A model generated the notes under the pieces. It saw only the letters and a list, made by a program, of their open reading frames with translations. It did no database searches and was not told the DNA's origin. The position numbers and the translations under genes were made by a program. A stretch of 37,783 bases of DNA. It comes from Octopus bimaculoides (taxonomy: Eukaryota). This document shows, in pieces, positions 3,132 to 34,175 of the stretch (position 1 is its first letter; every line of letters starts with the position of its first letter). The stretch covers positions 33,670,349-33,708,131 of the forward strand of contig NC_068989.1 in assembly GCF_001194135.2 (NCBI RefSeq). The letters are read 5' to 3'.

Positions 3132-4084
3132 NNNNNNNNNNNNNNNNNNNNNNNNNNNNNNNNNNNNNNNNNNNNNNNNNNNNNNNNNNNNNNNNNNNNN
3201 NNNNNNNNNNNNNNNNNNNNNNNNNNNNNNNNNNNNNNNNNNNNNNNNNNNNNNNNNNNNNNNNNNNNNNNNNNNNNNNNNNNNNNNNNNNNNNNNNNNN
3301 NNNNNNNNNNNNNNNNNNNNNNNNNNNNNNNNNNNNNNNNNNNNNNNNNNNNNNNNNNNNNNNNNNNNNNNNNNNNNNNNNNNNNNNNNNNNNNNNNNNN
3401 NNNNNNNNNNNNNNNNNNNNNNNNNNNNNNNNNNNNNNNNNNNNNNNNNNNNNNNNNNNNNNNNNNNNNNNNNNNNNNNNNNNNNNNNNNNNNNNNNNNN
3501 NNNNNNNNNNNNNNNNNNNNNNNNNNNNNNNNNNNNNNNNNNNNNNNNNNNNNNNNNNNNNNNNNNNNNNNNNNNNNNNNNNNNNNNNNNNNNNNNNNNN
3601 NNNNNNNNNNNNNNNNNNNNNNNNNNNNNNNNNNNNNNNNNNNNNNNNNNNNNNNNNNNNNNNNNNNNNNNNNNNNNNNNNNNNNNNNNNNNNNNNNNNN
3701 NNNNNNNNNNNNNNNNNNNNNNNNNNNNNNNNNNNNNNNNNNNNNNNNNNNNNNNNNNNNNNNNNNNNNNNNNNNNNNNNNNNNNNNNNNNNNNNNNNNN
3801 NNNNNNNNNNNNNNNNNNNNNNNNNNNNNNNNNNNNNNNNNNNNNNNNNNNNNNNNNNNNNNNNNNNNNNNNNNNNNNNNNNNNNNNNNNNNNNNNNNNN
3901 NNNNNNNNNNNNNNNNNNNNNNNNNNNNNNNNNNNNNNNNNNNNNNNNNNNNNNNNNNNNNNNNNNNNNNNNNNNNNNNNNNNNNNNNNNNNNNNNNNNN
4001 NNNNNNNNNNNNNNNNNNNNNNNNNNNNNATATATACATACACATAAACATATATACATACAGATATACATATGTACAAACACA

Positions 4085-5466: not shown

Positions 5467-5541
5467 ATTTTGCATCAATGAGTTTATTCACAAGAAAAGA
5501 CAAGTACCTTGTCCAATGTGTAATGTTGCTTTAACAAAGAG
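5467..5541 (+). CDS. BRCA1: BRCA1 orthologue, second RING exon (equivalent to human exon 5)
   Basis: Acceptor ttgtattttcatAG and donor AG|GTAAAT. The 75 nt read FCINEFIHKKRQVPCPMCNVALTKR, versus human [26 protein letters not shown]. In frame with 759-812 (AA+A = Lys). All six Zn ligands encoded in these two exons are intact. Confidence 0.92.
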
Positions 5542-7609: not shown

Positions 7610-7817
7610 AACATCCGCCTGACTGGCCTTCGTGCGGGTGACACATAAAAGCACCCACTACACTCTCTGAGTGGTTGGCGTTAGGAAGGGCATCCAGCTG
7701 TAGAAACTCTGCCAAATCAGATTGGAGGCTGGTGTTGCCATCCGGTTTCACCAGTCCTCAGTCAAATCGTCCAACCCTTGCTAGCATGGAAAGCGGATGT
7801 TAAACGATGATGATGAT
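7610..7817 (+). mobile_element. RTE 3'-tail retroposon copy without a VNTR array
   Basis: gcacccactacactctctgagtggttggcgttaggaagggcatccagc...gctagcatggaaagcggatgttaaacgatgatgatgat; nearly identical to 26940-27118. Confidence 0.85.
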
Positions 7818-8687
7818 ATGTTTGAAGGTATGAATGAATGTTATAGTTAGGTCACTATGGGACCAATTCGGAAGTTGTTTCTTGTCACAAAATCTTTCTA
7901 GAAGAGGAGTGGATAGAGCTCCTTAATGGAGATAGTGTGTGCTATCTCTGTTGCTCAGCTGCCTTGTGAATGAGTCCAATAAGACAAAGGTTGAGAGGGT
8001 ACACTTTAATAGAAAGAACTTTATACAGTCAACACTATATCAGTACCAAAGTAAAAGCACTAAGATGACACTGATTCTGAATTTCAAGTTTAAAGTTTGA
8101 CAGCAGCTCAAGATGAGTGTTGATCCAGCAAAAAAAATTACTTATAAGGAAAAAGAATTTGCAATTGTTCGTTATGTACAGTACACAAAGAAATAATTGA
8201 CTATGTGATCTTAGAGTGCCATTCTTAACAAAAAAAGAAAGGAAAAGAATCAGCAGGCTCAACAAAATGGGTAGATGTGTACAATGAAAACGGTTCTAAT
8301 ATTCCAAAACTGGAAGAGAAAAACATGCTACAAACATGCCAGAGAAGAAAAATGTTCTTAATAGTAATTTCAGTTCCAAACATATCAATTCATCTTCCTG
8401 AAAGAGTTTGAGAAATTGCCTAAGTATGAAGACTTAGAAATAAATAGAAGAATATGAGGATTGAAAGCTAACAGAAAATACAGTGATGACTATTAATAAC
8501 GATGATTTCTAACATTGTCACAAGGTCACATAATTTGAGGTAGGAAACAGTTACTTGCCTGAATATTTGACCAGTACTTATATTTACATTTAACATGCCA
8601 GTCATGTTTATTCCTCTCCACATCAATGTAATCTATATACTACTAAAACTTTCTAATTGATTGTTGCTTGCTTGCCTGTCATTTAAT

Positions 8688-9752: not shown

Positions 9753-10288
9753 TTAAATATATATACAGAGGCTAATACTTAAGATATATGGTTGCATTTC
9801 TACACCACATATCTTTCATATTTGCATTATGCAGTCAATTGATCAGTGACAGTTTATTAAGTTGCTGCAAATTCTTCATGTAAAATGTCTACCGTTTAAG
9901 CTGACACATTCACATACACATCAAACTGTCAATTTTACTGGGAAAGTATTTGCCTTAACTAACCTTCGATACATGTCTATCACTTGCTCTATCAAGAATA
10001 TTCTCTTTCCTCTACTTAATTACTTTTATTTCTTTACTGCTCTACCATTAACCACACTAAGAAATATGGCATTTACATTTTAAAGTTTTGTAAACCAATA
10101 ATAACTAAATTAATAATGTGTTCTTTGAAATTATATACTAATACTGAGTCAATCTTGAATACCAAACACAAAGATTTTTAAAAAAATGTTAAAAATAAAA
10201 TGATTATAAGGAACTTGACATTTAAGACCCCATGAATATTGTAATTTCTTTATTTTTCTTCTTCTTTTACTTTCATTCATTTCGAAAG

Positions 10289-10377
10289 AAGTTTTCAAGA
10301 AAATGGTAAACTGAAAAACATCATTGAGAAACTGAAGAATCTGATGTCTGCTGTGGCAAAAGATACACATTATACAC
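10289..10377 (+). CDS. BRCA1: BRCA1 orthologue, post-RING helix exon (equivalent to human 89-nt exon 6)
   Basis: Long polypyrimidine tract then AG, donor GTAAGA. 89 nt, phase 2-1, reading SFQENGKLKNIIEKLKNLMSAVAKDTHYT versus human [29 protein letters not shown]. Confidence 0.9.
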
Positions 10378-13284: not shown

Positions 13285-14365
13285 TCATCATCATCATCAT
13301 TTAATGTCTGTTGTCCATGCTGACATGGGTTGGGCAGTTTGACCAGGGCTGGCAAGCTGGGGAGCTGCACCAAACTCCAGTCTGATTTGGTATGGTTTCT
13401 ATGGCTGGATGCCTTTCTTAACACCAACCACTTTACAGAGTGTGCTGGGTGCATTTACATGGTACTGCATTGGTGCTTTTATGTGGCAGTGAACAAGCAC
13501 TTTTACATGGCACAGCATGGGTGCTTTTATGTGGCGCTGCATGGACACTTTTATGTGGCATTGCATAGGCAGTTTTACATGGCACTTCATGGGCACTTTT
13601 ATGTGACACTGCACAGGCACTTTTACATGTCGCTGCACGGGTGCTTTTATGTAGCATCGCCATGAGTGCTTTACACCACCAGAAGGATCGGTCTTAACAC
13701 TTCAGCAAGGTACCAGGCATCTCAGTCCTTTATCATCTCACCTGAACATTTCAGCATCCTCAGGTCGTTCTTCAGTACTTCATCCTATGTATTCCTGGGT
13801 CTTCATCTATTTCCATGTGTTCTATCCACTTCCGTGTGTTGCATCCACTTCCATATGTTTCATCCACTTCTTTATGGAGCTGTCAGCATCCATCGGCATC
13901 ACATGACCAAACCAGCATAGTCTTCTCTCTTGCACTCAGCAACCAATTCCTCTTATGCCTAACTTTCAATACACTAGCACTCTGTCGAACATGTACACTT
14001 ATATTACACATCTAGTAGAGCATACTAGCCTTATTCCTTTCTAGCCTTTGCAAGTCCTCTGTATTCAGGGCCCATGTCTCACTACCATGTAGAATTGCTG
14101 TCCATATGCATGCATCATACACTCTTCCTTTCACTCAGAGAGAGAAACCTTTCATGACTGACACAGGTAACAACTCTCTGAATTTCCTCCATCCTATTCT
14201 TATTGTAGCTGTCACACTCACCGTGCATCCCCCACTACTAATTTGGTCCCCAAGACAGCAGATATCTGCTACCTCTAATGAGCCACTGCGGCATTTAAGA
14301 GAATCAATTCCATGAGTCTGTAAATTTTTTAGGGATCCTGTGCATCTTCTACATACAAAAGCCAT
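13285..14365 (-). mobile_element. 5'-truncated RTE-clade LINE: RT C-terminus plus 3' UTR with a 24-bp VNTR and (ATG)n tail
   Basis: YLGDQISSGGC...RIGWRKFRELLP...KGRVYDAC...HGSETWAL on the minus strand (14365-13740). About nine 24-bp units cttttatgtggcactgcatgggca at 13452-13670; (CAT)n at 13285-13300. Confidence 0.85.
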
Positions 14366-15135: not shown

Positions 15136-15233
15136 TAACAGTGTGCAGAGAAGACACATCATTACCAAATCGTTCTTTAGCTGTTGTGAAGAAAGGAATC
15201 AAACGCAAAGTACATTTTAATCATAAATCAGAG
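15136..15233 (+). CDS. BRCA1: BRCA1 orthologue, internal exon
   Basis: Acceptor ttattttcatAG, donor GAG|GTTAGT. 98 nt, phase 1-0, open: (L)TVCREDTSLPNRSLAVVKKGIKRKVHFNHKSE. Phase matches both neighbours; no recognisable homology. Confidence 0.72.
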
Positions 15234-15895: not shown

Positions 15896-15959
15896 GTGCG
15901 AGATGTTACAAAAGTAGAAAATACACAGTTGAATGGTGAAAAATTAGCTAAAGTAAAAG
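15896..15959 (+). CDS. BRCA1: BRCA1 orthologue, internal exon
   Basis: Acceptor ttaattttttattAG, donor AAG|GTATTG. 64 nt, phase 0-1, reading VRDVTKVENTQLNGEKLAKVK. Phase-compatible with 15136-15233 and 29163. Confidence 0.72.
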
Positions 15960-16268
15960 GTATTGTAAGAAAAAATATATTTATCTATCAAAGGTTTCGT
16001 GAAGATATCCAAAAACATTGAACTAAAGGCATTATTCCATAGGATTGATAAACTTCTATATTTGAGTCTATCCAATCAGAACCTTAGCAAAAGAAAATAT
16101 CTGATATTGTATCAGTAAATTCATAACCATGTAAAAGACACATAAATGGTTTTATTATATTATTTTTTATAATTGCATTTCGTCAGCTTGCCTATGTTTG
16201 GCTTTAATCTCAGTAAAATGAACTAAAGGAAAAAAGTGGATCAGTGGCATGAATTTTAGGTATGTTAA

Positions 16269-16492
16269 CCCTTTTGATACTAATGCACTTGATCGTTGGT
16301 GATTACCCCTGGTCCTAGGATACAAACCTTTAAAATGATCTAATTTTAAACCTTCTATCAAAACTTTATCTCAGTTTATATTTCAAACACTAATTTAATA
16401 ATTATGAAGTTATTATACTAAATTCTTCATTATTTTCAAAATTAACTAAAGCCAATGTAGTGTATTTAAACAAAAATATGGTAACTAAAGGA
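16269..16492. mobile_element. piggyBac-type MITE (TTAA target)
   Basis: TTAA at 16265-16268 and 16493-16496 flank imperfect TIRs CCCTTTTGATAC / GTAACTAAAGGA (9/12 match). Confidence 0.65.
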
Positions 16493-18018
16493 TTAAAGGA
16501 TGATGTATTGAAAAAAGTTTGCAAATATTTCTCAGTTTATTTAAACTATCAATTAAAGTTGAAGAAAGAAAACAAAAATTCAGAAGTAATTGACAGAGGT
16601 TTCCAATGAAACGAAATTGTTTTTTATCAGTAAATGTTTTTGTTGACTGTTCAAGCAGGCTTCAGTAGACTACGCTTTGAGGCTAAGATCCAATAGCACC
16701 AAAATATGGCGATAGCTTTTCACCTTGCCTCATTAGGCATATAGATTAATTTTCAATTTTCTTGAAATTATCTCCCTTCTACTTCTGGCATAATAACAAT
16801 TGCAGGAATTTTGTTTTCTTTCTCCAAGTGAGAAATTTCAGTTTGATAATTTGGTGTGTACCTCATTCAGTTCATCATCTCTTATCTTTGATTTATGACA
16901 AGTCAGTTCTTGGTAATTTTTTAAAGGCTGTGGGTTGTTTTGATTATTTTTTTTTCTACTGAAAGACACTAATTTTTTTCAATCTTTTTCATTCTTATAA
17001 AATCTTTTTTGTTTTCAGTGTCATATATTCACTTTTCTTCAATGACATTATTTTGTTTATTTTCTTAGTTTTTACTGTTCATTTTGCTGCTTTATCATCT
17101 TGTTGTGATGTTTGTTGTGTATATTTAAATTTTTCCTTGCACGAAACTCTCCTCAATCTCATCCTCACATTCTAGTGTTGATCATATTTTTATATCAGGA
17201 ACTACTGGGGTTAGTAAGGTGTGTGGTGTTTAGTACTTATTCCCATACTTTGATTTCTTGTCTTTGTTTTGTAAAATCTTATTTGGTTACCATGATGACT
17301 CCTTTTCTAATGGTTATGTGGTTCTTTCATGCATGGAAACAGACATTTTTCAAAATATATTTTCTTACTATAAATATTAATTTGCTTATCGNNNNNNNNN
17401 NNNNNNNNNNNNNNNNNNNNNNNNNNNNNNNNNNNNNNNNNNNNNNNNNNNNNNNNNNNNNNNNNNNNNNNNNNNNNNNNNNNNNNNNNNNNNNNNNNNN
17501 NNNNNNNNNNNNNNNNNNNNNNNNNNNNNNNNNNNNNNNNNNNNNNNNNNNNNNNNNNNNNNNNNNNNNNNNNNNNNNNNNNNNNNNNNNNNNNNNNNNN
17601 NNNNNNNNNNNNNNNNNNNNNNNNNNNNNNNNNNNNNNNNNNNNNNNNNNNNNNNNNNNNNNNNNNNNNNNNNNNNNNNNNNNNNNNNNNNNNNNNNNNN
17701 NNNNNNNNNNNNNNNNNNNNNNNNNNNNNNNNNNNNNNNNNNNNNNNNNNNNNNNNNNNNNNNNNNNNNNNNNNNNNNNNNNNNNNNNNNNNNNNNNNNN
17801 NNNNNNNNNNNNNNNNNNNNNNNNNNNNNNNNNNNNNNNNNNNNNNNNNNNNNNNNNNNNNNNNNNNNNNNNNNNNNNNNNNNNNNNNNNNNNNNNNNNN
17901 NNNNNNNNNNNNNNNNNNNNNNNNNNNNNNNNNNNNNNNNNNNNNNNNNNNNNNNNNNNNNNNNNNNNNNNNNNNNNNNNNNNNNNNNNNNNNNNNNNNN
18001 NNNNNNNNNNNNNNNNNN

Positions 18019-18052
<34 letters not shown>

Positions 18053-18474
18053 GTTTGTCTCTCTGTAATAATTATTGTGGCATTTACTGTTAAATTAGCA
18101 GTTCCATACCTGTGCTTCTATTTCGTTCATTTGCTTATATTTTGCATACAAAAATGCAGACATACTATATACATACCACACAGTAAGCCATTATGCCTTA
18201 TTTTTTCAAGTAATTCATTACTACATATTCTTATGTGACTGCATAGGCTCACTTTGTTTCTTATTCTACAGCCACACCAGCAACTCAATGTCAACTCTTT
18301 GCCTTCTGCAAAATTTCAACAGTTCACTTCTCTGTTGCCGTCTCCCATTGCAGCCCATTTCCAGAATGTACCCATTTACGTACAATATCTCCATTACACT
18401 TCCATTCATTTGACTGTCAACTATATGATGGGTCATGTTACACACAGCGCTGACCGCCTCAAAGACGTGTATAT

Positions 18475-21400
18475 CTGCCCAATGTTTGAAGGTCATGCTT
18501 CACCACCTCATCCCAGGTCTTCCTGGGTCTACCTCTTCCACAGGTTCCCTCAACTGCTAGGGTGTGACGCATTTTCACACAGCTGTCCTCATTCATTCGC
18601 AACACATGACCATACCAGCGCAGTCGACTCTCTTGCACACTACATTTGATGTTTCTTAAATCCAACTTTTCTTTCAGGGTGCTTACACTCTGTTATGTAT
18701 GCACATTGACACATCCAGCGGAGAATACTGGCTTTATTCCTTGCAAGTTTACACATGTCCTCAGCAGTCACGGCCCATGTTTCACTGCCATGTAGCATGG
18801 CTGTTCATACACATGTCATACGGTCTACCTTTTACTCTGAGTGAGAGGCCCTTTGTCATCAGCAGAGGTAGGAGCTCTCTGAACATTGCCCGGGCTATTC
18901 TTATTCTAGTAGCTACACTTTCAGAGCACCCCCTCCCCGCTACTGACTTGGTCTCCTAGGTAATGGAGGCTATCAAATACTTGTAGTTTTTCTCCCTGGA
19001 ATATGACAGAAGCTGTTCTCTGTACATTTTCAGTGTTTATAGCACCTGAGCATTTTCCACAGAGAAAAACTATCTTCCCAGTTAGCCTTCCTTTGATATT
19101 GCTGCACCTCTTATGTGTCCATAGCATATACTGGATACATCTTATGGAGTTTCTACCTATGCCTTTTCTACAGTTTGAGCTGGGCCATCTACCTGAATGG
19201 ATTTGTGGTTTGTCTGCCTTCCTACTTATTAAGACTTTGGTTTTAACTAAGTTGACTCTAAGGCCCTTCGATTCTAATCCTTGCTTCCACACCTGAAACT
19301 TTTCCTCTAGTTCTGATAGTGATTCAGCAATTAGAGCAAAGTCATCAGCATAAAGGAGCTCCCAGGGACATCCTGTCTTGAATTCTTCTGTTATTGCCTG
19401 GAGGACTATGATGAATAGGAGGGGGCTGAGGACTGATCCTTAGTGGGCCCATACCCAGAATTCTTCACTGTACTCGTTGCCAACCCTCACCTTACTGACA
19501 GCATCTCAGTATATGGCTTGCACAGCTCTCACTAACCATTCATCTATCCCTAGTTTCCTCATTGACCACCAGATAAGGGATCGGGGGACCCTGTCAAAGG
19601 CTTTCTCCATGTCAACGAAAGCTAGGTACAGAGATTTATCTTTGNNNNNNNNNNNNNNNNNNNNNNNNNNNNNNNNNNNNNNNNNNNNNNNNNNNNNNNN
19701 NNNNNNNNNNNNNNNNNNNNNNNNNNNNNNNNNNNNNNNNNNNNNNNNNNNNNNNNNNNNNNNNNNNNNNNNNNNNNNNNNNNCTCTCTGTGACCTTCAT
19801 TACCTGATCCAACAACTTGATACCTCTGTAATTATTTGTATCTAAAGCGTCACCTTTGCTTTTGTAACAGTTGACTAAGGTGCTGCTACACCAGTCATTG
19901 GGTATGACTCCTTTGTGTATAACCTGGTTAACAATACGGATGACTAGGCTATAGCCGACACTGCCAGATATTTTGAGCATCTCTGCAGTGATTCCTGATG
20001 GGCTGGGGGCTTTCCCTGTCTTCATACTCTTAATTGCTTTATCTACCATAGTATTGTCAACTCGGATAGCTGGTCCCTCTGTTGGGTCGACATTTGGCAG
20101 ACTCTCTTTCTCCCATTCATCCTCTTTATTGAGCAACCTTTCATAGTGGCATCTCCAAACCTCTCTCATTGCAGCCTCGTTTAGTGCAAGTGTATCATCA
20201 TCCATGCTGACACATTTCTCTCCTACAACATCACGATTCTCTCTCACATGCTGTCTTGCAACACGAAATACTTCAAGTCTTTGGTCCTCACAGTGCAGAA
20301 CATTGACAAATTTTTTCTTATCTGCTTCCCCTCTGGCTAAATAAACCTGTCTCCTAGCTTCCCTTCTGGCAGTCTGATACAATTCCCTGCTACCACCGTT
20401 CTTTCAGTCCTTCCAAGTCTGTTTCTTTTCCCTAATAGCCCTGTCAACCACATTATTCCACCACTACGTTATTATGGATCAAGAGGGGACTTTGCACCAT
20501 CCACTGATCTGGTCAGTGGCTCTCAGCAGGTTGTCCCGTAGAAACCTCCAGTTGTCTTCCACATCATGTGATGTTGTATCCCCCTCTATTTTGTCAAAAG
20601 CTTTGAGTAATATGTCTCTAAATCTCTGTGCATTTGCAGGATCTTTAAGCTTCTAGACTCTTCTCCTCCATGCTTGTCGTCTTCTGGGCATCCATTTAGC
20701 CCTGATCCTGAAGTCGCTAACTACTAGTCTATGTTGTGGGGTACATTCTTCGCCTGGGAAGGTTTTGGCATTTATAAGCAGCCATCTTTCCTTTTTTTCT
20801 GGCGAGGATCTAGTCAATTTGGCTAGTGTGTTGAGCAGATCAGTAGGTGACTAGGTGACTGGCAGGTTTCCTGAAGTTAGTATTGCAAACCATAAGATCA
20901 TTTGCATTGCAGAACTCCAGCAGCCTGGTTCCCTCCTCATATCCTCCATGTATGCCATTGAAGCCCCCTGCATGTTGTCCAATATGTCCATTGAAGTGAC
21001 CAGTCACCAAGAAAAGGTCCCTATCATTCTTCAGCGAGGTAGTTTGCAAGAGGATGTCATAAAATCGGTCTTTCTGTCCATCAGGTAGCCCTGGCTGAGG
21101 GGCATAGGCCGAGATAATGGTTGCTAACCCATGATGTAGCCCTAATCTAATCTTAAGTATTCTATTGCATACTCTAACTACCTCGATTACCTTATCAACC
21201 CATTTTTCCGCAAGAAGTATACCTACACCCCCACCATCCCGTCAGTGTTCCCTGCCCAGAAAATCTTGTACCTGTGTTCTTTGCCTGTGAGGAACCTAGC
21301 AGAACCTCCTATCCACCTTACTTCTTGGATGCATCACAAATCTACACGTCTCCGTTCAAGCATCACAACAATCTTACCAGAGCTACCTTTCAGTGTGCCA

Positions 21401-21690
21401 ACACTGAGGGTGTGGGAGGTGTGGGCCCATGAGACCCTGGGATGGGGGACAGCAGTGTCATGTACCTGAAAAGAAAGCTCGCATTTGACTGAATTTATAA
21501 GTAAACAATAGCCTTCAACCTGCATACTCTACACCATTTTTATGTGCTATATAATTACTACCTTACATAGGGGATAAACCCTAAGTAGGGGTGGGGATGG
21601 CGTTAAGCCTTTAGATGTGTTCATGGGAGACAATCAAAGGATGACAGAGGATAGGGACTTCCGGTACAGGTGGTGTGGGTGGGTGGGCCA
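18475..21690 (-). mobile_element. Near full-length RTE-clade LINE, degenerate, 3' tail missing
   Basis: Minus-strand fragments in order: endonuclease (TLSVGTLKGSSGKIVVMLERRRVDL; GHFNGHIG; LMVCNTNFRK), linker, RT (KTGKAPSPSGITAEMLK...NYRGIKLL; WKQGLESKGLRVNLVKTKVL; YLGD) and C-terminus (RLRWYGHVLRM...GRGRPRKTW). About 3.2 kb. Confidence 0.9.
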
Positions 21691-21713
21691 ACGTACTACA
21701 AAATAGCAAAATT

Positions 21714-21754
21714 AGAATACGAATCCAGAAGAGCATCTTCTGGATTCGTATTCT
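21714..21754. other. Perfect 19-bp inverted repeat with a 3-nt loop
   Basis: AGAATACGAATCCAGAAGA-GCA-TCTTCTGGATTCGTATTCT. Confidence 0.95.
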
Positions 21755-24017
21755 TTTGGCGAAGTTATTAAAATGAAGTAGTGGAATCTAAGTCCGTGCG
21801 CTAGTTTATATAGGGTGGGGTGATGGAGGAGGAGGAAGTGTTGGCAAAGCAAGTGGTTATAGAAACAGAGAGAGAGGGGGCCAGAATTAGGCTTGTCAAG
21901 GATAGAATATGAGGGAGAAAAATATTTTTTGGGGATTTTGGGTAACATTATTTCATGAAACAGCAAATGCTTATAATAGTGAAATAGAATTGAAAAATCT
22001 TAGAATTTCCGGTCAGCCAATCTGTTACAAAGTTAGAGAAGTAAGTGATGATGTGACAAACTAGAATAAATGAATAGGTGGCGAATAGTAAATGCGCGTG
22101 AAGGAACTTAAGCTTATTTTAAGACAACAGCAAGGAAGATGAAACTATGTTTACATGGTAATGAAATAGATAGAATAATGAAAAGAACTAATAAGGGGTT
22201 AATGATCTGCGCGAGAAAAAAAACAAGATTTATCTGAGCATCTTCTGGATTCGTGCTCAGTGAAAACAAGCTATCAGCAAATATATTTTGCTTCAGTCTT
22301 TGGCCTGTTGTTATACTGGGACACCACATTGAAGGGTTTTTTGTCAATCACATTGGCTCCAACATTACTTTTATGTTTGGTGCTTATCTTTGTGATATTT
22401 TTGTTGCATTGCTAGTTACAGAACATAAAGAAAGACACTGTGTTTTTTTTTTAGAGGAATCTAATATTTATTTGCTTCCATTATGGCCTGCATATTTTGG
22501 TGAACTACATCTACCATCATTAAGATGCATCTCTGAGTCCCCAGAAACAGCTGTTGAACTTACCTCTTTCCCTTTAATATTCTCTGTCATTTGTAAGTTT
22601 GATCTATTAATATAAATAATTAATGAAATATATTCATACTTAAATATTCATCGTCTGAAAATCTGTCTTTGCTTTCTTTTTGTTTGCATGTATACATATG
22701 TATTTTGTATATCAAACCATGGCTAATATATTTAATTGGTTTATGCATGTGTGTGTGTTCTTTTTTTTTTTTCATATTAGTCTGTTTTTTCATTCTTGCC
22801 TCTCCTGAACTAACCCATATTTATTTTTCTGACTAAAGGATAATACATTCAAACATGGCTACAGACATGCATACATATGTATGCACATTGATCGTGTATA
22901 TATATGTGTATGAGAGTGTGTGTGTAAGGCTGTATGGTTAGAAGTTTGCTGCTCAATCACACTATAACCCTGGGATGACGAAAGTTTTGTGAGGGTTGAT
23001 AATGGGAATGGTATCTAGCTACACAAAATTTGTCTGATCTGTGCGAGCATAGAAAAGTGGATGTCTTGTGTGTGTGTGTATTACATGGATAATATTTTCA
23101 TCTGAGACATTATAACTGTATCTTATTGTTTAAGTGCTGCAATTTTGTCATGCACATATATTTTTTTGATTGCTGACATTTATCAATGGTTTCTCCCATT
23201 GTTTTGATGAGCTGTTGGTATTGTTGATGACACAGGTATGCTAGTCACTTAATTAAAAGTACAAGTAAAATGTAATGACCACGCTGTCATCTCCAGCCAT
23301 CACAAAAAAGTTATAAGGTATATTAGAATCAGATATGAATCTGTATGTATGTGCATAGCTGTGTATTGCTGAGGCATAACACCATGCATAAGTATCTTAA
23401 TATTAAATTGGTCAATGAACAAAGTATCAATCAAATACTGTGGCTGACATGTTAGACCACCCCTACCACTACCATCACCAAAAAGAGAAAAAAATTATAG
23501 ATCCATAAGTTGATGTGTTTGTGTGTCTTTATATGCTTTGCAAATGTGTAAAATATTTTGTAGATAAATCATTTATCCTCTTGTCTTAGAGTGAAAGATG
23601 ATGAAATTCTAATATGATCTGTACCACACCCAAAGACAAAACACCAACGATAAAAAAATAAATTTTCAACCACTCACAACTTTCACAGAACCTACACTAC
23701 ACACATACACAAGTCTACATACATTCTCTCTTTCTCTCTTTCTCTGTCTCTCAAACTCAGAATCCACACCATGTACATACAAGTGCACAAATACATACTT
23801 TTTCTCTTTTACATTTTCACTCACAATGCTGTAAGTATATACAGAATCTGAAAATTAGGAGACGGGCAAACCTGAAATAGAAAGGGCATGTCATAGATGA
23901 GTTTGTAAATGGTGTTGAAGGGACTAACAAATGAAGCTGATTGATTGACTGAATGATTAATCAAACAATTAATTACTTAATTGGTTAAATGGTTAACTAG
24001 TTAACTTATATTAATAA

Positions 24018-25246
24018 CTAGCAGAAATACCCGGCGTTGCCCGGGTTAAAGAGAATAATGAAATCTAAAAACGCCGTCTAGACTACGCATCATCTTTATA
24101 TATAGAGATGTATATACACACACGCACCCAAACACACGTATATATATGTATATCAATATAAATATATGAAAGTCAATGAAGTTTCGTAAAAGAAGGTGAT
24201 CATGTACATACTTTCTTGCTGTTGTGATTATAACACCTCATTGTAAACTATGTTCCTTGTTTTCCCTTGTGGAGCATATACAAATAGGTTTTTTGTTGCT
24301 GCCCACTCTTGAGCAGCCAACATACAGTTGTCCATGTGAGAAGTAGGGCTCTTNNNNNNNNNNNNNNNNNNNNNNNNNNNNNNNNNNNNNNNNNNNNNNN
24401 NNNNNNNNNNNNNNNNNNNNNNNNNNNNNNNNNNNNNNNNNNNNNNNNNNNNNNNNNNNNNNNNNNNNNNNNNNNNNNNNNNNNNNNNNNNNNNNNNNNN
24501 NNNNNNNNNNNNNNNNNNNNNNNNNNNNNNNNNNNNNNNNNNNNNNNNNNNNNNNNNNNNNNNNNNNNNNNNNNNNNNNNNNNNNNNNNNNNNNNNNNNN
24601 NNNNNNNNNNNNNNNNNNNNNNNNNNNNNNNNNNNNNNNNNNNNNNNNNNNNNNNNNNNNNNNNNNNNNNNNNNNNNNNNNNNNNNNNNNNNNNNNNNNN
24701 NNNNNNNNNNNNNNNNNNNNNNNNNNNNNNNNNNNNNNNNNNNNNNNNNNNNNNNNNNNNNNNNNNNNNNNNNNNNNNNNNNNNNNNNNNNNNNNNNNNN
24801 NNNNNNNNNNNNNNNNNNNNNNNNNNNNNNNNNNNNNNNNNNNNNNNNNNNNNNNNNNNNNNNNNNNNNNNNNNNNNNNNNNNNNNNNNNNNNNNNNNNN
24901 NNNNNNNNNNNNNNNNNNNNNNNNNNNNNNNNNNNNNNNNNNNNNNNNNNNNNNNNNNNNNNNNNACTACAGTATCGAAATGTGATTGTATCAGTTAGTG
25001 GAATAGTTTCATTTTTAAAGTGAAAGTATTTGACATGAGTGTTTTTGTTTCACTTTTGACACGTAATACTTAAATAGTGGAGGAGATATTATGTTGCCGT
25101 GTGCTCAAACTCTGCAAGAAGTTAATAATTTTTTTTTGACTAAAACACAACTGGAACCCTAAGTAAGGCATGTGTAAAATTTGAATGAAATTGGTTGCGT
25201 AGTTCTCGAGTTTTAGGGATTCACACACACAGACAGACAGACCGAC

Positions 25247-25279
<33 letters not shown>

Positions 25280-25305
25280 CACATTCTCATTTTTATATAT
25301 ATAGA
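24018..25305 (-). mobile_element. Non-autonomous Helitron with a RepHel helicase C-terminal remnant
   Basis: Minus strand starts A|TCTATATATATAAAAATGAG with (CTGT)n at 25305 and ends with hairpin CCCGG-GCAACG-CCGGG and CTAG|T at 24018. Helicase remnant EPYFSHGQLYVGCSRVGSN/KNLFVYAPQGKTRNIVYNEVL* at 24351-24228 with one frameshift. Linkage across gap 24354-24965 is inferred. Confidence 0.78.
25226..25282. repeat. (GACA)n microsatellite inside the Helitron 5' end
   Basis: acacacacagacagacagaccgacagatagacagacag... seen directly. Confidence 0.9.
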
Positions 25306-26309
25306 TAGAAAAAATGAAATAGAGCCATTATGTGTTTTTATTTGCCTAATGACCTTTCCTAGATACAGCAAAATTTAATTCATTGCTTTTCATAATTTAT
25401 TTAATTTGTTTTCATAATTCATTCAGTTCATTGTTTTTCATAATTTATTCAGTTCATTGGTTTTTCATAATTCTCCTGCTAAAACTACTCTACTGTCCAT
25501 TTCTCACAAATTTGGCAGCTTTGACAATCTCTCTTTATCATTCAACTAGGTTTTGCTTTCTCCAAGGTATTTTAATTTTCCTTATCTTAGAGTGTATATA
25601 CATCAATATGGAATTTATCATACTTTTTCATTTGATTTTAAAGACATTTGATACCATGAAGAATGTTTAGCCTTATCACTAAGTTCAAGCAGTTTGGTTG
25701 ATTCAGGAATTTGTTCTTATTATATGCTAAGACATTTTTTATTTTGAAGCATTCTTTCAGTATTGTTTATTTTCAATTTCCTTAATTAGAATATCCTATG
25801 TGTTTCAATTCCAATGTAAGTGTGAATATAGACTGGTTTCAAAAGTCACATGTAGCTTCTTGTTTATTGGTATATTGAAAGTGTTGTTTGGAACCCAACA
25901 TGAAGGTTCTAACAAAAATCTATAACAGGATTTTTTTGAGTATGGGTAAGTACAGTAAAATTTAAAATCATTAAAATTTTGTTTTTTTTATCACCATATA
26001 AAATCAGTTGCTAGTCAATATTTATTTGGAATAAATAACAGGTTTGTGGTAAATGACTCCAATGAAGAATATTGCACATTATTGAATTTTCAATTAAACT
26101 TGAATACATTTTCAACAAGTACACAAAGTAAAAATAACACAAAATAGTTATATGTGTATGAATTTATTTCAAAATGAAATACATTCTCCTACAAAAATAT
26201 ACTCACAAATAGTGATAAAAAGATCCACTAAAGAATTCACTACTCACTTTACAGGAAATTAAAAATTGGAAATGAAATAAATTTGAAAATAAAGTTATTA
26301 AAATTAAAT

Positions 26310-27118
26310 TCTGTATCTTTCGAGTGGGATCGTTTGCCAGTGCCCCTGGGCCGGCTTGCGGGTGACACATGAGGTTTTTCGAGCGGGATCGTTGCCAGTG
26401 CCCCTGGACTGGCTCTTGTGCGGGTGACACATGAAATCTTTCGAGCGAGATCGTTGCCGGTGCNNNNNNNNNNNNNNNNNNNNNNNNNNNNNNNNNNNNN
26501 NNNNNNNNNNNNNNNNNNNNNNNNNNNNNNNNNNNNNNNNNNNNNNNNNNNNNNNNNNNNNNNNNNNNNNNNNNNNNNNNNNNNNNNNNNNNNNNNNNNN
26601 NNNNNNNNNNNNNNNNNNNNNNNNNNNNNNNNNNNNNNNNNNNNNNNNNNNNNNNNNNNNNNNNNNNNNNNNNNNNNNNNNNNNNNNNNNNNNNNNNNNN
26701 NNNNNNNNNNNNNNNNNNNNNNNNNNNNNNNNNNNNNNNNNNNNNNNNNNNNNNNNNNNNNNNNNNNNNNNNNNNNNNNNNNNNNNNNNNNNNNNGGGAT
26801 CGTTTGCCAGTGCCCCTGGGCCGGCTTGCGGGTGACACATGAGGTTTTTCGAGCGGGATCGTTGCCAGTGCCCCTGGACTGGCTCTTGTGCGGGTGGCAC
26901 ATAAAAGACACCATTTCGAGTGTGGCCGTTTTCGTGCAGGTGACACGTAAAAGCACCCACTACACTCTCTGAGTGGTTGGCGTTAGGAAGGGCATCCAGC
27001 TGTAGAAACTCTGCGAAATTAGATTGGAGCCTGGTGTTGCCATCCGGTTTCACCAGTCCTCAGTCAAATCGTCCAACCCATGCTAGCATGGAAGGCGGAC
27101 GTTAAACGATGATGATGA
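26310..27118 (+). mobile_element. Young RTE 3'-tail retroposon copy with a CpG-rich 59/62-bp VNTR spanning a gap
   Basis: Units start tttcgag at 26318, 26377 and 26439; the array resumes after the gap; tail ...ccatgctagcatggaaggcggacgttaaacgatgatgatgat. Confidence 0.85.
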
Positions 27119-29162
27119 TACAAAAGTTAGTTAATATTTCTTTTGTGGGGAAAAAAGTAAAGCATCCTACTTTACATTATGTAATCTTCATCCACTTAAA
27201 GCGTTTCTGGTGTTGGCACTCTTGATCGTTTGTCTTTTCTGTTTTGTAGAGATATCTGAATTCAAGCAAATGTCTCTCCCACACAATTTTACTTTTCTCT
27301 CATTACATTTTGAAGGAATAACCTACTCTGAATTGTGTTGGGACATTTGCTCAGCACTATTAAAAGTTACTAAATTTTGGGGCCTCTTGCAGTTTGGGAT
27401 ATAGTAGGAAAAAAATCCTGACAGTATATTTGATATTTATATCTAACCAAGTATCACCACTGTTTATTACCTGGTCTACTACTCGTTAATAGTTCATCAT
27501 CTAACTCAATTTATTTACATCACCTGTAGAATTGTTGTAATTGTTATAAAGGGTGGTCCATTTCTGTGTATATTGTTGAGAATAAATGGACAGGAAATTA
27601 ATTAATCAGTCTGAAGTGGTTACCTAGCAAATTTCTTTTCAGCTGTTAGATTATTTCATCTGTTTTCAATTTTGATTTCTTTTTTTAATGCTTTTATTCA
27701 TTTTTACAATGAATGTGGCACATATATATGTTCTGCAAGTTTGACTATACTGACATACCAGTCAAAAAATAATATTCAGCTTTGGTTTTAGTATAGAGAC
27801 AATAATTTCCTTACCACATCATCACTGGGCCATGCTGACTTTCACCACTCTCTCTTTTTCTTGTATAAAAATTCCCACTTCACATATTTTCCATTGTTTC
27901 ACATCCTGTTTTGTAAGCTTGCCTGGCATATATTGCTGGAAGTGTCCAAGAGGAGTCTTATTTTAAATAATTTTCTTCTACATGTTGTGATATACTACTA
28001 TTTGCCTAATATGAAAATACTGATACAGCATTAAAAATTATATCTATGTTAGGATACTAGAAAGACAGAAGTCACCTATGAGTTCATTTGTGCTTTACTA
28101 ATTACTAATTTTGGTTAATTTCCTAAATCCCATTATCATAGTTCTTTTAAGAAAAAAAAAAAAAAAAAAAAGAAACCCATTATTTTATCCAGGATTGTAG
28201 AAGTCTGTATTTTGTACTCTAGTTTCTTTTGTTTATATCCTATGCAGTGATTATCCCTGACAGTTATATGAAGGATTAGAGTTGGATTAAACAAAAGAAA
28301 ATAGTCAATGGGATTCAGCTATCAAGAAGATTGTGATTGGGCCTAGTTTTTAAGTTTCCTTCCTTTTTGAAATTAGTCCACTGGTGCTGTCACTATTGGC
28401 ACAGGAATTAGTTTCACTAGTAGAAATAGAAACATTCAACTCCAAGTTTTTGTTGCATTTTTCATTTGCTGCAACAGTTTCTTCCTTCCAAAATTTCTAA
28501 AATTTGGTTTCACTCCTACTTCTTAATTGGAAGGTGCTATTAGTTTTTAAAAAGGCAAAAAATTCTGGAAATAAGAATTAAAAAATGTGAAAATTAGCCA
28601 GAACATTCGGTGAACACAAAATTCACATTATAGTAATGTCCGGCAGTATATAACAAGTATTACTACTAATGTAGTAATGAAATTTATGTTGATGTTTTGG
28701 TTTTAAAATGTTTAGGCAAATACATGTGGTAACATATGATCAAAAGTAGTCTCAGGCAGCTTACTAATGAAAGAGTTTAGTGATTGTTTTAGCTAATAAA
28801 AACAATAGATTTGACAAATTGAAGTTTAGTTAATTGGTAGAGAATTTGGGCTTTTCAGCCAACTTGGACGTAATCAGGATTATATTTCTTACTTTCCCCA
28901 CCTCAATTATCTGATTTTTTTTTTCAATATTTTGTCCGAAGCTTATTTGATTATGAGCAAATAGTTTAATGTTTTATTGCAAACTTCATTACAACAATTT
29001 TCATGCTATTTAATGTAGATAATGTGGAGGAAATTGGGGACGTATTTAAATGAGATAATTTTAATGATCTTTTGAGTACATTAAAAATATAATTGTAAAA
29101 GCATTTCTCAATGCATTCTAATTTCTTCTGATTCTGATATAGATCTTTCTCTGTTGTCATAG

Positions 29163-30148
29163 GTCATGAATTATATAAGAGTCTGAAAAATTACAGTAGA
29201 GAAAATGATATACGTAACAATAGAAAGAGAATAGTTGAGTGGCTTCAACAGCTTCCTCTTTTTTTTAATGATTGGAATGAAGATAACTTTGGAGTAGAAA
29301 ATAGTAACTGTAAGGAGTTTCAACCAGCTGAGAATAATATGAAGAGGATGCCAACACAGTGCATTTCTAATTTTCCTCTAAAAGAAAATGTTTGTGCTCA
29401 TTATGATCTCATTTCTGTATCAGAGACTTATTCAATTCATTCTGAAGTTGTCAACAGTGACTGCATTTACTCAAAAAAATGCTTGAGGAAAGAACAAAAT
29501 ACCTTTCTTTCTACAACAGCATCAAACTCCATATGCGATGTTACCAAAAGAACATTGAATCCAAGAAAACAATCAACTTCTTATAAAAGACTTCAACAGC
29601 AAATATCAAAAAGTATTGAAAAATTTAAAAAGTTCAGAGCCAAAAGAGAAAGAAATGTTTCCTCAAGTGTAAACATAACTCCAAAGAATTATGTTATTGA
29701 CTTAACTTCTCGTAAGTCAGTCTCTCTTCAGCAAGCATACACTACTGATGCATTTAGTAAAAAAAGAAAAAGCAACAAAATACTTGGAACTGAAAAATTC
29801 TTAATGAATTTGAGTGATGATAAAAGTAAAAACCAGGAGAATAAATCCAAAGTTTGGGATGACTCAAAACTGCCGAACATTGAGAGTATACAAACAAGAA
29901 GCAAGCAGAATCTGTATGAATTGAGAAGTAAGAATTCTGAAAGTGCAGTTACTTTGCCACCAGCTTTCATAGCTGGAACTCCTTTTCTAAATATACATCA
30001 TGGCCAGTTAGCAAAATACATTAAATGCAATAAAAACCAGTCATCTTTGTATGATATTCATAAGAAATTTGAAAATGGAATAGATGTTATAGACATCACT
30101 AGTGATCTTTCTTCTCAGTTTAATTTGAATAATTTTAAAAGCAGATAA
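29163..30148 (+). CDS. BRCA1: BRCA1 orthologue, large low-complexity exon (exon-11-like); 3' boundary uncertain
   Basis: Acceptor ctttctctgttgtcatAG at 29161-29162, phase 1. The frame is open from 29165 and extends the ORF-track 29339-30148 ORF by 58 codons. It contains RIVEWL (29228-29245), resembling the KVNEWF motif of vertebrate BRCA1 exon 11, and is S/K/N-rich. In-frame TAA at 30146-30148. Confidence 0.75.
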
Positions 30149-30370
30149 TTTTGTCATTAAGGGGAACATTTCCCATGAGCAATTAAATGCTAATCTGATG
30201 TACTCTACAAGATATCAAGGTATCAGGTGTCTACTCTTTGCAATATTCATGGTGAGTTTATCAACTGTTAAGCCATGAGGAATTACTTGCAAGATATACA
30301 AAAGTAACAAGAAGGACATACATATATAAGACTTACAAAGGTGTATGTATGTTTATGCATTTGTATTATA

Positions 30371-30556
30371 TCATCATCACATAACATCCATTTCCTATGC
30401 TGACATGGGTTGGACAGTTTGATAGGAGCTAGCAAGACTTGGGAACCACACCAGGCTCCATTGTCTGTTTTGACATGGTTTCTACAGCTAGATGCCCTTC
30501 CTAATGCCAACCACTTTACAGAGTGTACTGGATGCTTTTTACATAGCACCAGCACC
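30371..30556 (-). mobile_element. Older RTE 3'-tail retroposon copy
   Basis: tcatcatcac...ctatgctgacatgggttggacagtttga...ctacagctagatgcccttcctaatgccaaccactttacagagtgtactgg. Confidence 0.8.
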
Positions 30557-30946
30557 AACAGGGTTACCAAGCAACTTACAAGACAAAATTTTTTGGCTGG
30601 GGAGGCAGGTAATATAAGGCAGGGGTGGCTTTTTGCCAGTTGAGAGATTAATGGTAAAGAAGGATAAGGATAAGTGTCTTGTTGTAGAGTAGCTTCATGG
30701 ATGTCCCAGTTGGAAAAGAAAGGAGAGAAAGTTAGTAAGATAAAGAGAACAGATGAATGAGAGAGTAAGATAAAGCGAGTAATAGTGAGAGAGATGGTGG
30801 TGAAGATGTGTCAAGGGATGCTCTTGAGGGACATTGGGGGTGGTGAGAATAAGTGAGGTGATACAGAGGTTTGGAGTGGATGAGCGGGCAGGAAAGAGGT
30901 GACTAGCAAATGATGGAGAGAAATACAGGAGGGGCGGGTGGGAGGA

Positions 30947-31022
30947 GTGTCTTCTATTATAGCTCTGGACCAACCAATGCTTTGTGAGTGAATCTGATAG
31001 ACAGAAACTGCACAAAGCCCAT
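30947..31022 (+). mobile_element. Degenerate SINE body fragment
   Basis: gtgtcttctattatagctctggaccaaccaatgctttgtgagtgaatctgatagacagaaactg resembles the reverse complement of 2300-2375. Confidence 0.6.
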
Positions 31023-31514
31023 TGTGTGTATATGTGTATGTGTCTGAATGTTTACATTGTGTGCTTCACATGAAAAAGCACTGCAGACAGTGAAGTCAGT
31101 TTATATTTCCCTTTTAATATATCATCCAGTAGTTCTGCATTTTCAAAGGCAAGTGGTATGTAAGTTCTTTTACCTGAAGAATGGATGAGGGTTAGCAACA
31201 GCAAGGACAGTATTGTTTGAAAGAAAATCACTTTTTGATGTTGCTGCTACAAGCACCTTATTTCACCTTAAAATAACTACCTACAATTTTCTTATATTAG
31301 TGTTTTCATACACATAAAGTAACTCTTTTCCAAAAGTGCTGTTTTAAATGGAAGAAGTTTTAGTCAATAATTCATATACCAGGATTATACCAAAAGTAAT
31401 GCAAAGGCTGTCTTAACTTTTTTTATTAACTGACATAGGTCCTTTAAATTGCTTATGCTGGTAGAATACCTCTTCCTTTCTAGTAACTTTTCTCTTCCTT
31501 ATATAATAATAGGT

Positions 31515-32715
31515 TTCAAAGAGAAAGCAATATGCCATTACTGAGTTTTTGATGAAGGAATGGTACAATCTGTCTGACCTCTACAGAAGGTTACATGGTG
31601 TTTATAGAGATGACACCATTGACAAGAGTAATGTGCATGGATAAATAAGGAGGTTTAAAGAAAGGAAAACCAATACTGATGACAAACCACAGAGTGGGAG
31701 ACCACCAACTGTGACCTCTGACATGAATCACCAGTGAGTGGAGGAATTGGTTTGGGCAGACAGACAAGTTGCAATCTATGAGATTACTTCTCAGCTGGAT
31801 TGTGGTCAAAATGCATTACAGAAGATGGTGAAAACTTTGGGTTCAAAAGCCAGCAATTGGCAAACAAAGTCTTTGATGGTGAAAGACTTTGGGTATCAAA
31901 AAGTATGTACAAAGTGAGTACCTCAACAGCTTCCACCTGATTTACAGGAGAGAAGGGTGGAAATTTGCTCTGATCTGCTGGAGACATTTAAAAGCCAGTG
32001 AAGATATGTTTTTTTTTTATGATCTAGAAATGAAGGCTCAGTCTGTAGAATGGTGTTACATTTCTTTTCCAAAGCCCAAGAAGTTCAAAAGCCAGCAGTG
32101 GGCAAAGAAAGTCTTTGATTTTCTAGAATGTGATGTACTATGAACAGCAAGTTGTACATTGAGAAACTATTGCAGATCAGAGCAAATTTCCATCCATCTA
32201 TCCTTTAAATCAGGTGTCAGCTGCTGAGGTACTCACTTTGCACATGCTTTTTGATACCCAAAGTCTTTCACCATCTTCTGTAATGCATTTTGACCACAAT
32301 CAGTGGAGAAGTAACCTCATGGTTTGCGACTTGTCTGTCTGCACAAATCAATTTGCCCACTCATTGGTGATTAGGAAGAAGAGACCAAACAAGAATCTGA
32401 AAATGATCTACATTCACCAAGATAATGTATGACCACATCATATTTGGCAACAAATCAAAGAATCAGCAAACTGGGCCTGTCAGTGGTCCACCATCCAGCA
32501 TACTGCCTTCATCTGACATTCTGAGACTTCTATCTGTTTTTTTTTTCCCATGAAGGACAGTGTTTGGAGACAATGATTTGATGACACAGATGAGGTGAAA
32601 ATGGCTGTTAAGAATGGGTACAACAGTGCTTGCCTAATTTTTTTTAAAGAGGATTCAATTGTTACTTCAATCATGGTGCAATCACTCCTCTTGTAATGTA
32701 GATTGTGTTTTGTAA
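31515..32715 (+). mobile_element. Decayed mariner transposase with an internal inverted duplication
   Basis: KQYAITEFL...DDKPQSGRPPT...GYQKVCTK*VPQQL (WVPHEL-type motif), then HQDNV*PH and HPAYC...DFYLF (C-terminal DD34D region). 32172-32372 is an inverted copy of 31726-31978. TIRs not identified. Confidence 0.75.
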
Positions 32716-33049
32716 TACTTTTGTATAGAATAAGAATTACTCTACCAACGTGCAATTTGAACAACCGGTATCAGTTAATGATAATGTTATACCCACTTTT
32801 GTATTACTTCTGGTACAATTCTTTATAATTTATTGATATTAATTAAAAGTGTAAGCTGAAGCAAAATACTCTACTTTTCTTTTACTTCAAGAGCTATACA
32901 AACAACTCAATTTTTAGGATTTCTTATTAATCAGCTATAGCTTATTTTTTTCATTTTAAATTGTTATACATAAAATATACATATGTTGGGCTAGGTTTTT
33001 GTTAATAGTGATTTCTTTTTCTCACATAATCCCTCTCCTGATGTAACAG

Positions 33050-33127
33050 AGAAAGATGAGAAAAAAGATGGTACAGATGGTCTCAAGAGCTGTTCAGATA
33101 TTAAAGAATGCGAACCTGCTGATTTAG
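33050..33127 (+). CDS. BRCA1: Probable further BRCA1 exon
   Basis: Acceptor ccctctcctgatgtaacAG, donor TTAG|GTAATT. 78 nt, phase 1-1, open: KDEKKDGTDGLKSCSDIKECEPADL. An alternative acceptor at 33007-33008 (phase 2) is also open. Confidence 0.6.
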   Translation, partial: RKMRKKMVQMVSRAVQILKNANLLI

Positions 33128-33461
33128 GTAATTTTTAATCTCTCTCTATATATAAAAGAGTTTGTGTGCATTTAAAAACTGAGTTGCTGATTTTGACATA
33201 TGGTTACCAAATAAACTTTATTTTAATCAACATATTTTTTATGTTATCTAACAACCAGCTTTAGTTATTTGAAAGACACTGCTCTACAGCAACGAGGTTT
33301 CATTAGAAAGTGAAAATAGTTTCACACTTTCAATTTGAACCAAAATTACAAAGTGTTGCATTACAACTGATGATGTGTGAATAATGAAAGTAATGTTTTT
33401 CCGAATTAGTCACATCTGTACTATAATAAAGAAAGCTGCTTATCATCTATCTATATATATA

Positions 33462-34175
33462 TTGGGTCACCCCATAAGTAATGTGGTTTTTTCAATTGCA
33501 TGAACCAAAATTTGGAGGGGGATGGAATAAACTACCTGAATCAACTTGTTATTAAAGCAGTAGTAATTTTACCTTGTTCCTTATTCTTAGTGCAAGTTTT
33601 GAAGAGTGCAGTTCGATTTTAGCAGTTATTTTTTTTCAAACCTATGATGGAAGTGAGCATATTCGGCATACTTTGCTTTATGAGTTCAATGAAGGTAACA
33701 ATGCATTGGAAAGTGTGAGGAATATTAATGCAGAATATAGTGATCGGACAATAAGTATAAACCAGTGTCAACAGTGGTTCCAGAAATTCCAAGCTGGAAA
33801 CTACAGCCTAGAAGACTAGCCTTGTCCTGGAAGATTTGTAGAGCTTGACAAGGATGTCCTGCAAACCCTGGTGGAACAAAATCCCTTTGTAACTGTTGAG
33901 GAACTTGCAGAGAAGCTTGGATTTGGTCGTTCAACCAGTCGTTCAAGTCAGTGCTAGAACAACAAAATAATCATCTTTGGTTTCAAGGCAAAAGATGTTC
34001 TTCCATCAGGATAATGCTCGGCCACATACAGCAAAGATGACATTCCAAACGCTGGAGCAGTTTGAATGGGAAACGATGCCCCTGCCACCATATTCGCCGG
34101 ACATTGCCCCATCTGATTATCATTTATTCTGCAGTCTTCAAACTCATTTGGATGGAAAAAGTATGAATTCTGCTC
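33462..34175 (+). mobile_element. Internally deleted mariner element
   Basis: TA|TTGGGTCACCCCATAAGT TIR-like start; HIRHTLLYEF...QWFQKFQAGNYSLED*PCPGR; then HQDNARPHTA...PPYSPDIAPSDYHLF. 3' end truncated. Confidence 0.85.

Follow-up and report, generated by a model that had tools for sequence, protein, structure and literature searches.

We analysed a window of 37,783 nucleotides (nt) from Octopus bimaculoides (forward strand of NC_068989.1, positions 33,670,349 to 33,708,131), which is base-identical to chromosome CM046609.1 of assembly GCA_001194135.2 and carries the 5′ third, with the first seven annotated coding exons, of the RefSeq gene LOC106871917. The gene is labelled "uncharacterized protein", with isoforms X1–X5; by its RING match, terminal BRCT, exon sizes and large-exon phases, we identify it as a BRCA1 orthologue. 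The reading frame of its large exon continues past the annotated exon end and closes at a stop codon, TAA 30146–30148. This stop most likely (probability about 0.58) marks a shifted exon end, standing in what would be the tail of a formerly longer exon, and not a regulatory switch. All coordinates below are window positions on the forward strand unless marked (−).

The end of the large exon

As annotated, the large exon spans 29163–29927 (765 nt = 3 × 255) and is phase 1 at both ends, with the acceptor ttgtcatAG/GT at 29162/29163 and the donor GAA/GTAAGA (slashes mark exon boundaries). The exon frame, in which codons start at positions p with p mod 3 = 2, is open from 29138 to 30148, where the TAA closes it. 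RefSeq X1, X2 and X3 and an older model of 1620 residues all read ...QNLYELR/K/KDEKKDG, which corresponds to 29927 joined to 33050 (AGA A/gtaaga at the donor and acag/AG AAA GAT at the acceptor). A preliminary description of this stretch had taken 29927 as a productive phase-1 donor and 33050 as the start of the next exon, and these models use both sites in this way. It had also let the large exon run into the stop, which is the case in no annotated product; because every model that contains the large exon ends it at 29927, TAA 30146 sits 219 nt inside an annotated intron. The next coding exon (33050–33127, 78 nt, phase 1 at both ends) is an exon-like piece with an AG acceptor, open in phase 1 only. 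X4 skips the large exon in-frame (15959 to 33050), and X5 skips both the large exon and the 78-nt exon (15959 to a site past the window).

Two annotation efforts concur on the 29927 donor. NCBI Gnomon normally needs support from RNA sequencing (RNA-seq) for variants such as NAGNAG choices, alternative 5′ ends and exon skipping. The five isoforms comprise variants of just these kinds (a NAGNAG acceptor, an alternative 5′ end and two exon-skipping forms), from which we infer that the annotated junctions are not purely ab initio. Judging from the models, 29927 is presumably the donor actually used in vivo.

Four GT dinucleotides around the stop are donor candidates: CTC/GTAAGT (GT at 29712), GAA/GTAAGA (29928), AAG/GTATCA (30220) and ATG/GTGAGT (30252). 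Read in the exon frame, the donors at 29711, 29927 and 30251 have phase 1 and the one at 30219 has phase 2; the latter takes phase 1 in the +1 frame, which is open between 30129 and about 30275. This phase arithmetic agrees with the preliminary description, as do the positions of the features that it listed (the frame and its TAA, the four GTs, AAAA at 30137–30140, ATTAAA at 30182–30187 and the piece at 33050). The donors at 29711, 29927, 30219 and 30251 score 2.2, 2.1, −1.0 and 6.5 bits, respectively. The donor at 30251 is by far the strongest in the exon region, where all others reach 2.7 bits or less, and the other donors annotated in this gene score between −0.5 and 4.6 bits, a range that includes 29927.

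A 3.4-kb genomic contig of a related octopus (L001), from the Logan assemblies of SRR11869391 and four sibling runs, is collinear with window positions 28916–30273 and 31238–33160. At the positions matching 29712, 29928 and 30220, the contig reads TG, AT and AT, and there is no donor at any of them; GT is kept at 30252 alone and lost at 29712, 29928, 30220 and 30227. ATG/GTGAGT (30249–30257, phase 1) is thus the sole one of the four candidates shared by both species, and we regard it as the probable ancestral donor. The site at 29711, which had been put forward as a second productive donor, is weak, absent from the relative and used by no annotated model. The site at 30219 is indeed phase 1 in the +1 frame, as had been proposed, but it is likewise weak, absent from the relative and without annotated use.

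In the related octopus, the exon frame is open for 109 codons past the equivalent of 29927 (P = 0.0002 by composition and 0.009 empirically), and it stops six codons after the conserved ATG/GTGAGT, whose phase fits the next exon. The segment 29928–30251 (324 nt = 3 × 108; 327 nt in the relative), which is annotated as intron in the window, is open and in-frame there and would represent a fossil exon tail. The window frame itself is open for 73 codons past 29927 (P = 0.003 by composition and 0.034 empirically), and the run-on at the six other annotated donors is 1, 1, 12, 39, 20 and 3 codons. In this alignment of the exon with one related octopus, the stop is not kept.

Two deletions relative to the related octopus account for the stop. 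A 2-nt deletion (AG) at 30143–30148 (AGCAGAGAT to AGCAGAT) yields the in-frame TAA 30146–30148, and a 1-nt deletion (A at 30192) at 30191–30193 (GCTAAATCT to GCTAATCT) leads back to the original frame, with a net change of −3. The 16 codons between the two are frameshifted and hold four exon-frame stops (30146, 30158, 30173 and 30191). Since the original frame resumes after 30192, the donor at 30251 is again phase 1, and the window tail, read in the frame of the relative, has no stop anywhere. Neither deletion falls in a long homopolymer, and TAA 30146 and both frameshifts are absent from the relative. The frameshift that had been suspected near the stop is thus present in this comparison. It does not consist of one extra A in the AAAA run, a proposal that nevertheless comes close in its effect, but of the deletions of AG at 30143 and of A at 30192. 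We infer that the related octopus keeps the ancestral state and that the deletions are real.

The pattern of substitutions and indels between the two species agrees with a coding past of the tail. From 29163 to 30142, we find three indels (12, 12 and 6 nt), all of them multiples of three. The tail (29928–30251) has two in 324 nt, neither a multiple of three and none within 29928–30142. The flanking introns have 37 indels in 2041 nt (1.8 per 100 nt), and only 5 of the 35 in the downstream intron are multiples of three. Substitution divergence is 8.6% in the exon core (29163–29927), 7.9% in the tail and 11.4% in the flanking introns. In the frame of the relative, the ratio of non-synonymous to synonymous substitution rates (dN/dS) is 0.58 for 29928–30142 and 0.40 for 30143–30251; it is also 0.58 for 29165–30142, a stretch that includes the first part of the tail. 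The open frame of the relative, together with the exon-like dN/dS and divergence, suggests that the tail was formerly coding. If one lineage had evolved at the intron rate, 2.9 indels would be expected in the tail, and the two deletions are compatible with neutral decay. Small intron indels are symmetric (13 missing from the window and 12 from the related contig), which indicates no deletion bias in the window assembly.

We propose the following course of events. The ancestral large exon would have ended at 30251. A phase-1 donor at 29927, 324 nt and thus a multiple of three upstream, would have arisen in the O. bimaculoides lineage when AAT became AGT through an A-to-G change. The abandoned tail, now intronic, would bear the deletions of 2 nt (30143) and of 1 nt (30192), which break the frame and give TAA 30146. 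The exon frame would continue into the intron for 73 codons because this intron begins with 324 nt of former exon tail. Either the frameshift came first and was then bypassed through a latent donor, which is the intronization route of Catania and Lynch, or the new donor came first and the tail decayed neutrally; both orders fit equally well. As an intronized segment would be, the tail is coding in the related lineage, a multiple of three in length and stop-containing in the lineage where it is annotated as spliced out. Should the deletions be real, the locus would offer a clean, datable 5′ splice-site shift by which 108 codons were lost from the disordered central part of BRCA1 in one octopus lineage. 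A long open frame past a weak donor can accordingly be the fossil of a former exon end and need not be evidence for a switch.

The acceptor side of the same intron (33040–33056 in the window, about 3220–3235 in the related contig) differs between the species as well. The ACAG/ acceptor at 33049/33050 is specific to the window and is missing in the related octopus through a 4-nt difference. Both sequences share an AAAG/ acceptor that lies 6 nt further downstream, is also phase 1 and would start the exon at 33056. Because the relative lacks both ACAG/ and the GT of 29927, both ends of the intron after the large exon differ between the species. This intron also holds an interspersed-repeat insertion of about 965 nt (30273–31238), which is present in the window only and begins about 22 nt downstream of the putative ancestral donor; as judged from its position, the insertion could weaken the use of the old 30251 donor.

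Alternative explanations

Several points weigh against a shifted exon end. It is hard to explain why an intact donor such as 30251 should be passed over for the far weaker one at 29927. The comparison involves a single other species and no outgroup, and the direction of change is inferred from function rather than from phylogeny. It is also slightly suspicious that both deletions fall within the last 109 nt of the tail and add up to −3 exactly. Finally, the use of 29927 rests on gene models, which need an open frame and would select this donor also with a stop that the assembly had introduced by mistake.

Both donors might be in use, which we consider unlikely, though plausible in view of the much greater strength of 30251; in this form the central idea of the preliminary description would survive. 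The deletions would then be real, 29927 would be the productive site, and splicing from 30251 would give an mRNA with the stop 105 nt upstream of the junction. This mRNA would be degraded by nonsense-mediated decay (NMD), as a switch that lowers dosage or regulates by unproductive splicing, or translated into a RING-only protein. Such use overlaps with the shifted exon end, of which it would be the transitional phase. In its favour, the 30251 donor is intact and, with 6.5 bits, well above the 2.1 bits of 29927; a transitional phase of alternative splicing is expected from intronization theory (PMC2586383); and in human BRCA1 an internal exon-11 donor is used alongside the terminal one (PMC10055590). 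On the other hand, no annotated protein isoform keeps the tail, and the read-through products of 450 and 451 residues do not occur in a collection of 15 billion proteins, a weak test that finds exact matches to deposited products only; the truncated RING-only isoform that had been envisaged is likewise not among these proteins. Since the related octopus lacks the stop, any switch would be young and selection for it not demonstrable. It is rather improbable that 30251 still takes a substantial share of the BRCA1 pre-mRNA; the young frameshift would then make this site an NMD sink or a source of RING-only protein, and 29927 would set the level of full-length protein. If this were true, the locus would show an intronization event in its alternative-splicing phase, in a genome-maintenance gene.

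The two deletions might instead be assembly or consensus errors around which a model driven by open reading frames was built. The true sequence would then contain the AG and the A, the exon would end at 30251, and 29927 would have been picked around a false stop; the RefSeq protein would lack 109 residues and need correction. We think this improbable. In its favour, the reference is a gap-rich short-read draft, in which the window has 7 N gaps and the gene 19, and the lesions lie 81–130 nt from a high-copy repeat junction, a kind of place at which draft contigs are presumably often stitched. The lesions sum to −3, the window tail is free of stops in the ancestral frame and the strong, conserved 30251 donor is intact. 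Gene predictors must keep the frame open, and the RefSeq model is visibly imperfect, as it starts inside the RING and has one BRCT only. Against this, two independent indel errors would be required within 50 nt, whereas about 980 nt of adjacent exon show none. The 13-to-12 symmetry of the small indels and the position of both deletions outside long homopolymers also speak against error, and so do the agreement of two annotation efforts on 29927 and the five isoforms, which under the Gnomon rule imply RNA-seq input. Exact look-ups found neither the window reading frame nor a hypothetical repaired one among deposited sequences, and as control frames were absent too, this negative carries no information.

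The remaining two explanations are far weaker. Like the BRCA1-IRIS form of the human gene, the octopus transcript might read through 29927 and be polyadenylated after ATTAAA 30182, to give a stable RING-plus-exon protein ending in ...NNFKSR. The architecture is formally that of BRCA1-IRIS, with a frame that extends 73 codons into the intron and a stop 34 nt before the hexamer. However, in so AT-rich a window an ATTAAA is met every 1.1 kb, the related octopus has the hexamer as plain coding sequence (Q-L-N) and lacks the stop, and no such product is among the proteins of the collection. We regard this explanation as very improbable. Pure chance, with a coincidental run-on frame past 29927 in a tail that was never coding, is hardly credible. 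Although 3.4% of the 73-codon stretches in the non-coding sequence of the window are open, the frame of the related octopus is open for 109 codons up to a conserved consensus donor in the correct phase, the divergence of the tail is exon-like and not intron-like, and 29928–30142 contains no indels. The length of the open frame past 29927 is above chance, unlike the ATTAAA and GTAAG features. GTAAG occurs once per 1.1 kb in the window (31% GC), and in the Ser/Lys-rich exon it represents the codon pair xGT AAG (Ser/Arg/Cys-Lys). All three exon GTAAG sites are phase 1, which is unsurprising because a GTAAG in an open frame cannot fall in the G-TAA-G frame.

The regulated switch of the preliminary description, whether as a poison exon or as an IRIS-type element, is unsupported, and the absence of the stop from the relative argues against a conserved element of either type. 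A shifted exon end with a decayed tail remains our preferred explanation.

We also considered and rejected several ways in which the tail might still be translated. A compensated coding frameshift is incompatible with the four exon-frame stops in the 16 codons between the deletions. A programmed +1 frameshift at AGA-TAA-T followed by a −1 shift would need a slippery site for the return shift, and there is none. A ribosome that stayed in the +1 frame would arrive at 30251 in phase 0 and encounter a TAG where the 33050 exon ends. Adenosine-to-inosine editing of the four stops was rejected from the sequence. An intron further downstream in the model, which we suspected of being an artificial one with a length divisible by three, is an ordinary T-rich intron with stops.

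Gene identity and other features of the locus

The assignment to BRCA1, already suggested by the preliminary description, is borne out by the RING, the BRCT and the exon structure. The RING peptide is spliced from a 54-nt exon (759–812) and a 75-nt exon (5467–5541). Its best matches are the human BRCA1 RING structures 8grq_K and 1jm7_A (expectation value (E) about 3e-9), approximately 1000-fold better than the RINGs of TRIM proteins or RNF8. In Pfam, the same peptide matches zf-C3HC4 with E = 6.7e-9 and the BARD1-type RING with just 0.017. RefSeq X1 has one BRCT_2 match above the cut-off (residues 1647–1740, E = 8.5e-8). A second BRCT was not detected in X1, and the model probably lacks some exons, as the locus has 19 N gaps.

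Human BRCA1 exons 3, 5 and 6 measure 54, 78 and 89 nt. The octopus exons of 54, 75 and 89 nt run parallel to them, and the difference between 75 and 78 nt corresponds to a one-residue gap in the PDB alignment to BRCA1 residues 22–66. The large octopus exon is phase 1 at both ends, as is human exon 11, with its boundaries at c.670/671 and c.4096+1 (PMC10055590). The large exon contains no Pfam domain and has no detectable sequence similarity to human exon 11, and its homology is therefore positional only.

Searches of a set of 5.8 billion proteins added little. With the large exon as query, the only match was P0001, and with the spliced N-terminal peptide there was none; neither search listed the RefSeq proteins of the window itself. 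Six proteins from a representative search (P0003–P0008) were discarded, since their match to P0001 is confined to its final ~40 residues, with the intron-encoded CNIHGEFINC among them. These six hold a repeated ICKIHGEF motif and look like a repeat protein unrelated to BRCA1, and the end of P0001 is not real protein. A literature search on cephalopod BRCA1 gave nothing relevant.

The X1 exon chain in the window is 769–812, 5467–5541, 10289–10377, 15136–15233, 15896–15959, 29163–29927 and 33050–33127. The RefSeq coding sequence starts at ATG 769, inside the 759–812 exon. This exon has a phase-2 acceptor at 758/759, which implies that the RefSeq model lacks an upstream coding exon for the first Cys-x2-Cys pair; we found no candidate for it in the 1990 nt upstream (positions 1–1990 of the extended region L003). 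The "uncharacterized protein" LOC106871917 is accordingly a BRCA1 orthologue with a model truncated at its N-terminus. The 89-nt exon (10289–10377), colinear with human exon 6, has a tandem NAGNAG acceptor at 10286–10292 (aaAG/AAG/T; exon start 10289 or 10292), which explains the one-residue (Arg) difference between X1 and X2. It is followed by a 98-nt exon of the RefSeq model (15136–15233) and a 64-nt exon (15896–15959), the latter spliced straight to 33050 in X4.

The remainder of LOC106871917, with a second large exon and the BRCT exons, extends up to 62 kb past the window. The second large exon is of low complexity and about 2.5 kb (829 residues) long, at L003 40711–43197 (window-equivalent 39479–41965), so that the single "exon 11" region of vertebrates is split in the octopus. 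Further downstream, at about L003 69448–69705, lies a coiled-coil-like stretch, LENDLVEMKRQIALLEAKLG, which we take to resemble the PALB2-binding coiled coil of the human protein.

Three further features may be mentioned. The third phase-1 GTAAG of the large exon, at 29310 (ACT/GTAAGG, 1.9 bits), lies 148 nt into the exon and is shared by the two species. Its place in the exon is reminiscent of the human 11p/delta-11q donor, but its score is at chance level. The 30273–31238 repeat has a SINE-like (short interspersed nuclear element) core, with copies at 911–1077, 7647–7819 (−), 13290–13460 and 26931–27120 (−). A remnant of a Mos1/mariner transposase (Pfam HTH_48, E = 8e-18) is found at 33556–33816, in the intron after the 78-nt exon.

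Comparison with known systems

In BRCA1-IRIS, exon 11 is extended into intron 11, which encodes 34 further residues. The octopus frame resembles it in that it extends from the large exon into the next intron and ends at an in-frame stop. The difference is that the octopus run-on would be a decayed former exon and not a conserved intron-encoded tail.

Poison exons and NMD switches based on alternative 5′ splice sites, for example in splicing-factor genes, are typically highly conserved, including the stop. The octopus donor at 30251, if it is still used, would likewise bring a segment with a stop into the mRNA, over 50 nt upstream of an exon junction. In contrast to these switches, the octopus stop is lineage-specific, and the related contig contains no conserved stop-containing segment.

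Human BRCA1 exon 11 and the octopus exon are both large, domain-poor, central and phase 1 at both ends, irrespective of whether the octopus exon is taken as 29163–29927 or as 29163–30251. Like the human 11p donor, which gives delta-11q, 29927 is an internal donor with the same phase as the terminal donor, so that the distal part of the exon can be removed in-frame. Skipping of the whole exon is also in-frame in both species, in human delta-11 and in octopus X4. In human tumours, the internal exon-11 donor bypasses exon-11 frameshifts (PMC10055590), and the octopus internal donor would similarly bypass a frameshifted tail. The two genes also differ. In humans both donors coexist and the full exon is the main form, whereas the octopus annotation has the internal donor only. 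The octopus internal donor is not conserved in the related species. Unlike human BRCA1, the octopus gene has a second large exon of ~2.5 kb downstream.

Catania and Lynch (2008) described how stop-containing exon segments are intronized through latent splice sites (PMC2586383). The octopus segment is similar to theirs in that it is coding in a relative, is a multiple of three in length and has a premature stop where it is spliced out. It also appears to be removed through a new and weaker splice site, and it belongs to a fast-evolving part of the protein without a Pfam domain. It differs in that the octopus would gain no new intron; instead, an existing intron would be extended by 324 nt upstream through a 5′ splice-site shift. 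We regard the octopus locus as a probable case of small, clean exon-end evolution in BRCA1, with a modest chance that it also serves as an unproductive-splicing sink. If the deletions are real, it parallels the bypass of exon-11 frameshifts by the delta-11q donor in tumours and matches the model of stop-driven intronization.

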